Source: Styela clava (taxonomy: Eukaryota). From it: a DNA stretch of 64,000 bases. The stretch covers positions 21,948,001 to 22,012,000 of the forward strand of contig NC_135251.1 in NCBI RefSeq assembly GCF_964204865.1, in the 5' to 3' direction. Under the pieces are notes generated by a model that searched no databases, was not told the origin of the DNA, and saw only the letters and a list, made by a program, of their open reading frames with translations. A program made the position numbers and the translations under genes. Below are positions 24,401 to 27,578 of this stretch, one piece after another (positions within the stretch are counted from its first letter, which is position 1; every line of letters begins with the position of its first letter).

Positions 24401-24536
24401 TACATCGAATACTCCCGGCAGCATTACTGTGAAATCTTCGCAGTCACCAGCACCGAGTGCTACACAATTGAGAGTAAAGAGTGAGATGAGCGATAATATG
24501 AAACAACCTTTTGAAAAAAGGACTAAATATGTGTGA
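12454..24536 (+). CDS. MED6: Mediator of RNA polymerase II transcription subunit 6 (~285 aa, 7 coding exons)
   Basis: Exons 12454-12472, 13690-13858, 14100-14191, 22943-23025, 23404-23443, 23951-24138, 24270-24536 (858 nt, phases consistent). Peptides [83 protein letters not shown] and [14 protein letters not shown] match recalled MED6. The short first exon (MANPEK) is the least certain. Confidence 0.95.
15892..16082. repeat. Two-copy direct repeat, 105-bp period, in MED6 intron 3
   Basis: gattgcaacat.tattgc...ttgttctagtc.gttcttt.gtattt.aaaactgaaatcattacatcctgta at 15892-15977 and 15997-16082. Confidence 0.85.
16360..16481. mobile_element. Short hAT (Charlie-like) MITE
   Basis: Termini CAGTGGTTTTGAACCT ... 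AGGTTGAAAACCATTG resemble Charlie-type TIRs; TSD degenerate. Confidence 0.65.
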
Positions 24537-24935
24537 CAGAACTGACAATTGAGAAGGCGTGTAGCCATGTTAGCCACTATGCTGCTAAACTCAACACTTC
24601 CAAATATTTTTGCATTAGATATTTGCTTGTTCATGATTTCTTTTTATCAATATACAATGACCACAGTTCAGAAACATGACAAATGAAATGTTGCATTAAG
24701 ACTTGCTTACAGTGTACCTTTTGAAAAAAGGACTAAATATGTGTGACAGAACTGACAATTGAGAAGGCGTGTAGAGCCATGTTAGCCACTATGCTGCTAA
24801 ACTTAACACTTCCTAATATTTTTGCATTAAATATTTGCTTGTTCATGATTTCTTTTTATCAATATACAATGACCACAGTTCAGAAACATGACAAATGCAA
24901 TGTTGCATTATTTTCTAAGACTTGCTTACAGTGTA
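24507..24935. repeat. Tandem duplication (~210 + ~219 bp) covering the MED6 stop, the intergenic region and the METTL12 stop
   Basis: Copy 1 24507-24716, copy 2 24717-24935; both start ccttttgaaaaaaggactaaatatgtgtga and end aagacttgcttacagtgta, with a few substitutions and indels. Confidence 0.95.
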
Positions 24936-25576
24936 TAAAAAATAGTCCCTCACAGATGTAAATTGCTGACAGGAAATGCTGATATTAGAAGTAATATCAT
25001 CTGGTAACCTTTTGGCAGCTTCTTGTAGAAGGTCGATGCGCAGTTCTGGTGGTTCGTCTGTCACTTGTATTAAAACTCCATCTTTGCATAATATTTTATA
25101 GATGTTTGCCAACGCTCTGCTTGCTAGTTCAGTTCCTTTAGGTTGCTTTAATATAGAATCTGTAGTACCTTTATCCAGTGCTGCACAGATACTTCCTGTA
25201 GAGAACACTTGTTGCTCTGCTATATTAGCATGAACAAGAGTGCAGTTTCTGACATTATCAAATTTTGAGTTTCCATCCATTTTGTTTTGAAGCCTCCACA
25301 GTGAATCGATTGCAAAATCCAGACAGTATACTTCAACATCTTTCAGATCATATGCAATGTTTGCCCCAAAAGTTGAGTCTCCGCAGCCTATGTCCAGCAA
25401 GTATGGTTTTCTGTTACCTGGATTATCTTGGGCACTCAGTGCAGTTCTTATCATAGGTAGAATGGAATCCTTCAGATCATCATAATTTGCAAACCATTCG
25501 AAATCTGGGTTAGGTTTAGTGGTTCTATAGAATTGATTCCATGTGTCTAACAATCCAAGAGATGAGTTTATGGAAT
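24915..25576 (-). CDS. CSKMT: Citrate synthase lysine N-methyltransferase (METTL12/CSKMT) domain exon; predicted exon 3 of an NME6-METTL12 fusion
   Basis: FEWFANYDDLKDSILPMI, SAM-binding motif I LLDIGCG, ALDKGTTD, GVLIQVTDEPPELR and YFLYTV align with recalled METTL12 (FDWFFGYDEV, VLDVGCG, LLDKGTWD, LIQFSDEDPDVR, YFAYLI). Preceded by acceptor tgtttcacAG (25577-25578); no in-frame ATG before the conserved N-terminal motif. Confidence 0.85.
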
Positions 25577-25646
25577 CTGTGAAACAATGTGATTTAATAG
25601 TGAGAATTTGTGTGCAACAGAAACTAACCAACTTATATGAAATGTT

Positions 25647-26321
25647 TTAATGAGGTGGTATAGCCTTACTTTTATCCCAATGAAATTGTGTGTTTGTGTT
25701 ATACTCTTTGGTGGAAGCAATGTCGACTGTGTTTTCCCCAAAAATTATCTCGATTTCTCTGTTGGCAGATTCTTCAGAATCTGATCCATGTGTAGAATTT
25801 CTTGTGTCTGTTAAACCATACTCACCCCTCAACGAGTATGGTTCTGATATATTTGCCTGTGAACATAATTGCAAACATTAATAATATGTATCACACAACC
25901 TGCTTATGTTGTTGTGGAAGCGAATTGGGAGCAATATTTTTCTTTCGCCAACAAGATTTACTGGACTAGGTATGCAACAGAATTCCACATTGTAGTTACC
26001 CCCAATCCGAAAAAACTTGACCTTAAAGACTTTCGTTGGACCCATTAGGCTGCGCCAAACTTTTATAGAATCTTGTCCAGCAAGCACTAAAGCAATTACA
26101 GGACCACAAGTAATGTAATCCAGAAGTCTTTCATAGAAGAATCTCTCACTGTGCTGGTTGTAAAAAATCTCAGCATCCTTTCTTTTCCAGTGAACTGTTT
26201 TCTTTCTCAAAATGCGCAAGTTGTTTTTTGAAATACGATCGGTAACTGCTTTCGTTGCGATGGGATTCAGGGCAATATCTGGCTTTAACAATGCGAGCGT
26301 TAATTGAGTCTTTGATGACAT
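25647..26321 (-). CDS. NME6: Nucleoside diphosphate kinase 6 (169 aa stand-alone; exon 2 can instead splice at 25670 to the METTL12 exon)
   Basis: Exon 1 26022-26321, exon 2 25647-25856. QLTLALLKPD, RFFYERL, WRSLMGPTKVF and GLTDTRNSTHGSDS (catalytic His intact) are diagnostic of NME6. Confidence 0.93.
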
Positions 26322-26874: not shown

Positions 26875-27465
26875 CTAGTCCATCTGGGCTCGACTATTGA
26901 TACTGGGGTGCAGCGCATGAACATTCTTTTCCATTTTTCTTCGAAGTCCTAACTCGCTATAAGTAAAATACACAATAGTGAGTATTAGGACAACAAATGC
27001 TTTGAAGTAATCATTTGCAGACAACCACTTCGCTGGGTCATCCAGTGTGTAGTAAACACTTCTAACTCTGTTGAACTTTGCAAACATAGGATCGGAAGTG
27101 ATAAGATTAAAATATCTCCAATTAGTGGGATGATACTTCTTTGTCCAAAATTCTCGCCTTAGTCTTCCACGAATCGCTTGCCTCTTTTGGTGCGCTTTCA
27201 GATCCTCCGGGGTCACATTTTTACAGTTTTCGGGGTCAATTTCAGCCGGCATATCATGAGCCCAATCAGCTCTGAAGTCTTTGGTAGGAGCTAAATATTT
27301 TGGAAATAGTTGTTCACCCATAACTTCCGAGTATTGCTTATAATCGATTTGTTTCTCCAACTTGCCATCTTTTGCAGTGACGGATGGTAATGTCGAAAAT
27401 CTTTTATTAGAACAAAGATCCATCATGGCCCTGCAAGCAGGGTAAGGCACCTTCAATCTCAACAT
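26875..27465 (-). CDS. NDUFB4: NADH:ubiquinone oxidoreductase subunit B4 (B15)-like, single exon, with N-terminal extension (196 aa)
   Basis: FPKY...MPAEIDP..NVTPEDLKAHQKRQAIRGRLRREF...HP...DPMFAKF aligns with recalled NDUFB4 (FPKY...LPETLDP..ISPE.RRAQAERLAIRAQLKREY...DP...NPALLRW); one TM segment near the C-terminus. First ATG at 27465 (the ORF track starts at a TTG). Confidence 0.8.
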   Translation of the reverse strand: MLRLKVPYPACRAMMDLCSNKRFSTLPSVTAKDGKLEKQIDYKQYSEVMGEQLFPKYLAPTKDFRADWAHDMPAEIDPENCKNVTPEDLKAHQKRQAIRGRLRREFWTKKYHPTNWRYFNLITSDPMFAKFNRVRSVYYTLDDPAKWLSANDYFKAFVVLILTIVYFTYSELGLRRKMEKNVHALHPSINSRAQMD

Positions 27466-27578
27466 CCTCAACGGCTATTTTGTAACAGCGGTAACACCGT
27501 ACCGTGCCCTTCGTACAAGATAACCAAATCCGTGAACACATCACTGCCGTCCTTGGGCGCCGCTAGTGGGCCAAATCA

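Follow-up and report, generated by a model that had tools for sequence, protein, structure and literature searches.

A conserved gene fusion joining an NME6-type nucleoside diphosphate kinase to a CSKMT-like lysine methyltransferase in ascidians

The ascidian Styela clava very probably possesses a single gene in which cis-splicing connects an entire NME6-type nucleoside diphosphate kinase (NDK), through a disordered linker of approximately 25 residues, to a CSKMT-like lysine methyltransferase, the product of an old fusion shared by stolidobranch and phlebobranch ascidians. The gene lies on the minus strand of the window, the term used here for the whole stretch of 64,000 nucleotides of S. clava DNA (contig NC_135251.1) that was analysed. 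Fused gene models are already public in three species, that of S. clava in RefSeq, and this is not a new gene; the value of the present analysis is in noticing and dating the architecture. The fusion is apparently an architectural variant of two known enzymes that is conserved and has gone unremarked in the papers searched.

Both halves of the fusion represent mitochondrial enzymes whose characterisation is recent and whose understanding is still poor. NME6 provides pyrimidine ribonucleotides for mitochondrial transcription, and CS-KMT (CSKMT, METTL12) methylates citrate synthase; we know of no clear physiological role for the latter enzyme. Human NME6 is a nucleoside diphosphate kinase of the mitochondrial matrix whose activity depends on RCC1L (PMC10505918, PMC11312278), and it is reported to be imported there with no conventional targeting sequence (PMC11312278). 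The distribution of CS-KMT is scattered and is mainly vertebrate (PMC9006661). Our searches of the literature found no paper treating both NME6 and METTL12, and the one paper in which both CSKMT and NME6 occur was irrelevant. Surveys of the Nme family that list the Ciona Nme6, as well as a 2024 review of NME6, do not mention a methyltransferase, and no description of a fusion between an NDK and a protein lysine methyltransferase was found in the literature searched.

The S. clava gene consists of three exons joined across two GT..AG introns. Its features are given below in window positions, with a slash marking the splice site in each donor.

Exon 1, 26321-26022, minus strand, 300 nt: begins with the ATG at 26321 and encodes the first 100 residues of the NME6-type NDK domain; donor AAG/GTCAAG
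Intron 1, 26021-25857, minus strand, 165 nt: GT..AG; its retention leads to an in-frame stop ending at 25878
Exon 2, 25856-25670, minus strand, 187 nt: C-terminal part of the NDK domain, including the catalytic NSTHGSD, plus the greater part of the linker; phase 1 at its 3' end
Intron 2, 25669-25577, minus strand, 93 nt: GTAAGG..CACAG; donor AAAA/GTAAGG, with the G at 25669
Exon 3, 25576-24915, minus strand, 662 nt including the stop codon: N-terminal extension W..Y...EWF and seven-beta-strand lysine methyltransferase domain (DIGCG, LDF, DKGTTD)
RefSeq isoform X2, minus strand, 291 residues: donor ACA/GTGAGA (26150/26149) inside exon 1 and internal ATG at 26176; junction 25670^25576 the same as in the main isoform

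An in-frame TGA is located two codons 5' of the exon 1 ATG (26321), and in intron 2 a branch-like site, TTCTCAC, is followed by the acceptor TGTTTCACAG. The codon at the junction of exons 2 and 3 is split as A+AT and encodes asparagine, giving the junction WDK-N-SINSS. The spliced coding sequence is 1149 nt in length and specifies a protein of 382 residues comprising the NDK domain, the linker, and the seven-beta-strand methyltransferase. The numbers given in the sequence-only reading were all correct when read on the minus strand of the window. Its principal prediction, that splicing of an in-frame 93-nt intron fuses NME6 to a methyltransferase, is borne out by the S. clava RefSeq protein XP_039258645.2 (P0001), which was retrieved with the exon 3 open reading frame and contains both Pfam domains. 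An exon-by-exon comparison showed this protein to be identical, residue for residue, to the translation of the window, including the sequence across the junction and the total length: residues 1-100 are encoded by exon 1, residues 101-162 by exon 2 and residues 164-382 by exon 3, with the split codon supplying the asparagine at position 163. An exact match of this kind, exon by exon, to a 382-residue RefSeq protein is more than chance. The exons were searched singly, and P0001, being identical to them, served as the query for searches over the whole length. The donor used by isoform X2 puts the sequence downstream of it out of frame with the main ATG. The annotated reading frame of this isoform starts from the internal ATG in another frame and preserves just the final third of the kinase domain; it may represent non-productive splicing.

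Relatives of the fusion, which the sequence-only reading had suggested looking for, were identified by an exhaustive HMMER search together with two word-indexed searches. Ciona intestinalis (XP_002129729, 386 residues) and Phallusia mammillata (CAB3262926, 384 residues) share this architecture, as do five further database lineages (P0002, P0203, P0106, P0150/P0198 and P0159/P0199). NDK and methyltransferase Pfam domains were found in the S. clava protein and in eight other fusion proteins, and the sequences from Ciona and Phallusia together with P0002, P0203, P0106, P0150, P0159 and P0199 align end to end with the S. clava protein at 29-64% identity. Across a linker that is itself variable, a single open frame is maintained in nine sequences. 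Because the fusion occurs both in Styela, a stolidobranch, and in Ciona and Phallusia, which are phlebobranchs, it is, as dated from these sequences, older than the divergence between the two ascidian orders that were sampled. The five further lineages are represented by uninterrupted open reading frames on contigs of 1.3-3.2 kb; since both introns of the S. clava gene contain stops, these frames are most likely derived from spliced transcripts. Elsewhere the two domains are encoded by separate genes, with stand-alone NME6 among the search matches from vertebrates and protostomes. By this comparison the gene is a conserved Rosetta-stone fusion, with the two domains held in one frame across several lineages and separate in others.

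Three of the lineages, P0150, P0159/P0199 and P0106, are divergent and come from assemblies of sequencing runs and metagenomes; in some of their sequences DKATID takes the place of DKGTxD. If these three are not ascidian, the fusion would be older or more widespread than shown here. A scan of metagenomes with P0199 recovered no fusion, just an unrelated contig with a stand-alone NME6 (L007).

A search of the S. clava genome with each half of the protein found no second copy of either: the methyltransferase exon matched just itself, and the next NDK exon was 34% identical. Several candidate stand-alone methyltransferase genes were considered among the database sequences and rejected. P0124 and P0204 fall inside the clade of the fusion P0203, with very short distances between them, and P0119 adjoins the Styela group and has first residues that are possibly intron-derived; all three were set aside as partial open reading frames.

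The kinase half is identified by several lines of comparison. The Pfam NDK model (PF00334) scores 81.1 bits on exon 1 and 39.8 bits on exon 2, against a cut-off of 27, and its scores are 119-127 bits in the fusions of Ciona, Phallusia, P0002 and P0106 and 80 bits in P0150 and P0159. The NDK fold of the predicted structure superimposes on solved NDKs with a TM-score of approximately 0.85. The top named matches of this half, from vertebrates, a shrimp, an oyster and a termite, are all NME6 at approximately 50% identity. In a phylogenetic tree the kinase domains of eight fusions group together inside NME6 with moderate support (SH-aLRT 84; 84-86); two stand-alone sequences fall among the fusion group, and the multi-domain NDKs fall apart from the NME6 part of the tree. 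Nine fusions show no variation at the residues H123, N120, R90, R110, Y54 and D126, and LLKPD is also conserved; by correspondence with NME1, these residues include the catalytic histidine and the nucleotide-binding residues. As judged by its matches and its position in the tree, the kinase half belongs to NME6.

The fusion resembles human NME6 in having a single NDK domain (approximately 50% identical to vertebrate NME6) in which the catalytic histidine and the nucleotide-binding residues are kept, and in having no long N-terminal presequence (PMC11312278, PMC10505918): the fusion protein begins straight at the first NDK strand. Unlike human NME6, the S. clava protein carries an additional C-terminal methyltransferase domain of approximately 220 residues, and the C-terminal tail of NME6 is shortened and diverged. 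The stand-alone NME6 relatives that lie nearest to the ascidian fusions (P0134, P0175) possess basic N-terminal extensions of 40-50 residues that resemble targeting sequences, and these extensions are missing from the fusions. It is common for NDK domains to be combined with further modules, as in the multidomain NMEs (NME5, NME7, NME8/9), and our matches included multi-NDK proteins as well as NDKs joined to a GTPase or to a nuclease. The last two are fungal NME6-like proteins, an NDK with a small GTPase in Fennellomyces (P0035) and an NDK with an S1/P1 nuclease in Dissophora (P0037).

The methyltransferase half is characterised chiefly by its motifs and its fold. The Pfam class I methyltransferase models score just under their gathering cut-offs on exon 3 of S. 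clava, and pass them in Ciona and Phallusia. Motif I (DIGCGDS) and the acidic Post I residue (in LDF) are in place, with D224, G226, G228 and D249 invariant, and DKGTTD is found at residues 297-302, where D297 and K298 are invariant in the fusions. A Post II motif of the form [D/E]-K-G-T-X-D defines the family that comprises eEF1A-KMT2, eEF1A-KMT4, the N-terminal domain of METTL13, and METTL12 (PMC5737405). Although a single-sequence search of the PDB with exon 3 returned no solved structure, a profile built from exon 3 and two relatives matched eEF1A-KMT4 (PDB 2PXX) with an E-value of 2e-5, in an alignment that starts at the W..Y extension and continues to the end of the protein. The same entry was the top methyltransferase match to the predicted structure in a Foldseek search (target TM-score 0.74), so that eEF1A-KMT4, which belongs to the same motif family as exon 3, is the best solved relative by both profile and fold. 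From these matches the methyltransferase half is a member of the wider eEF1A-KMT4-like family.

Within this family, orthology to CSKMT is probable, with small margins over the paralogues in the nearest-cluster searches. RefSeq names the S. clava protein CSKMT-like. In a comparison of language-model features, the clusters closest to both the Styela and the Ciona protein are those of CSKMT, and for Ciona these clusters are also first and second by structure, with TM-scores of 0.85 and 0.83. Thus the METTL12/CSKMT identity put forward in the sequence-only reading holds as far as membership of the eEF1A-KMT4-like family, and the CSKMT name itself rests on RefSeq and on the nearest-cluster searches. 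Human CS-KMT shares with the fusion the seven-beta-strand fold, the W..Y...EWF extension and the DKGTxD Post II motif; it differs in that it stands alone, unfused, and bears a cleavable targeting sequence at its N terminus (PMC9006661). No cleavable mitochondrial targeting sequence of the CS-KMT type is present in the fusion, in which the NME6 domain lies upstream of the methyltransferase and occupies that region.

It is conceivable, although we consider it the less likely reading, that the fusion is real and the methyltransferase is some other eEF1A-KMT4-like member, acting on a different substrate that is possibly tied to the partners of NME6. The margin by which the Atlas features place CSKMT above the clusters of EFM4/eEF1A-KMT2 type is small (0.98 versus 0.97-0.96), the sole solved relative is eEF1A-KMT4, no named vertebrate CSKMT was retrieved by the word-indexed sequence searches, and the scattered, mainly vertebrate occurrence of CS-KMT would also fit such a reading. 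Against it stand the RefSeq name and the leading rank of the CSKMT clusters by features in two species and by structure in Ciona.

The second intron could in principle act as the switch that the sequence-only reading had suggested. Here the fusion would remain the main product, and the 93-nt intron would also be retained, or used for cleavage and polyadenylation, to yield an NME6-only protein ending ...WDKSKAIPPH. The sequence-only reading had noted the stop and the ATTAAA signals. Retention of this intron closes the frame after eight extra codons, at a TAA at 25649-25647, and the intron contains two ATTAAA hexamers, one overlapping this stop (25651-25646) and one 16 nt before the acceptor (25598-25593). 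At least two ATTAAA arose in 1.2% of shuffled sequences, which is a weak hint from a post hoc test, and such hexamers are not rare in an intron that is 68% AT. In the operons of Ciona, the upstream poly(A) site lies exactly at the downstream acceptor (PMC1488885). Conversely, both the donor and the acceptor of intron 2 are strong, and no NME6-only form occurs among the RefSeq isoforms retrieved, for which a protein of approximately 170 residues falls outside the length range searched. We regard such a dual output as unlikely.

Several observations indicate that the methyltransferase is translated as part of the fusion. From the kinase domain to motif I, the S. clava protein has a sole methionine, residue 204, which lies past the W175..EWF191 extension, in agreement with the earlier claim that the methyltransferase has no start of its own. 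This methionine is not conserved, being a glycine in P0002, the closest relative, in which no methionine precedes motif I; in five of the eight fusions, the stretch from the kinase domain to the W motif is free of methionine. The N-terminal extension of eEF1A-KMT4, located ahead of the core fold, serves as a wall on one side of the substrate tunnel (PMC5737405), and a product initiated at Met204 would therefore be without this tunnel-forming extension. Because no conserved methionine precedes the N-terminal extension, the methyltransferase, on this comparative reading, has to be translated as part of the fusion. The organization of the splice sites bears on the same question. In Ciona, spliced-leader trans-splicing uses acceptors without a partner donor, and acceptors having an upstream donor as their partner are cis-spliced (PMC1488885); a consensus donor lies 93 nt upstream of the exon 3 acceptor, which makes an operon unlikely.

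Some caution in accepting annotated fusions comes from human EEF1AKMT4-ECE2, in which a methyltransferase of the same family is likewise annotated as spliced to a neighbouring gene and for which there is neither EST nor proteomic support (PMC5737405). In that case the methyltransferase has its own start, whereas the ascidian methyltransferase lies downstream, has no start, and belongs to a fusion that is conserved across orders. That a tunicate-type operon instead yields separate NME6 and methyltransferase proteins, with a spliced leader added at the 25577 acceptor and the fused models being read-through artefacts of the kind that the human annotation represents, is very improbable: tunicates do trans-splice and have spacer-less operons (PMC1488885), and the arrangement of stop, ATTAAA and acceptor does resemble an operon boundary, but the missing start codon, the partner donor, and a frame kept open across the linker in nine sequences as divergent as these all speak against it. 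The comparative evidence is strong, and we take the fusion to be confirmed as real, on a case built from RefSeq models and homologues.

The predicted structure of the fusion protein shows two well-folded domains connected by a linker (approximately residues 150-171) with pLDDT below 50, and the pTM is 0.58. These values fit a tethered pair of domains and not a rigid unit. We propose that in ascidians NME6 may have replaced the cleavable mitochondrial presequence of the methyltransferase. Since NME6 needs no conventional presequence to enter the matrix (PMC11312278), the NME6 part would carry the methyltransferase into the mitochondrial matrix, and there the latter could act on citrate synthase or on another matrix protein while tethered to a kinase that supplies NTPs.

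A broader proposal is that NME6 and CS-KMT are functionally coupled in the matrix even where their genes are separate, for example with NME6 serving as an import vehicle and as a local partner in, or regulator of, the methylation of citrate synthase. The origin of the fusion would then be the gain of a donor at a spacer-less boundary in a tunicate operon, such that a trans-splice acceptor became the acceptor of the 93-nt intron, and the intron may still allow an NME6-only mRNA. This combined scheme is speculative, and we hold it to be more doubtful than either the different substrate or the dual output considered above. The conserved fusion, taken with the failure of the genome search to find a second copy of either half in S. 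clava, predicts that the two enzymes work in the same compartment, perhaps in the same complex, and that the unconventional import signal of NME6 can carry a cargo domain. Ciona offers a way to test both predictions, as electroporation and knock-outs are routine in this animal.

Two features of the surrounding DNA were also observed. Directly 3' of the stop codon, at window positions 24506-24935, there is a tandem duplication with a 212-nt unit (1.9 copies, 96% match). The repeat unit takes in the last approximately 20 nt of the coding sequence, indicating that the gene's 3' end together with its untranslated region has been duplicated. Upstream, and separated from the NME6 start by a gap of 553 nt that is very unlike the spacer-less operons of Ciona, an NDUFB4-like open reading frame (Pfam PF07225, 27.9 bits) occupies 26875-27471 on the minus strand.
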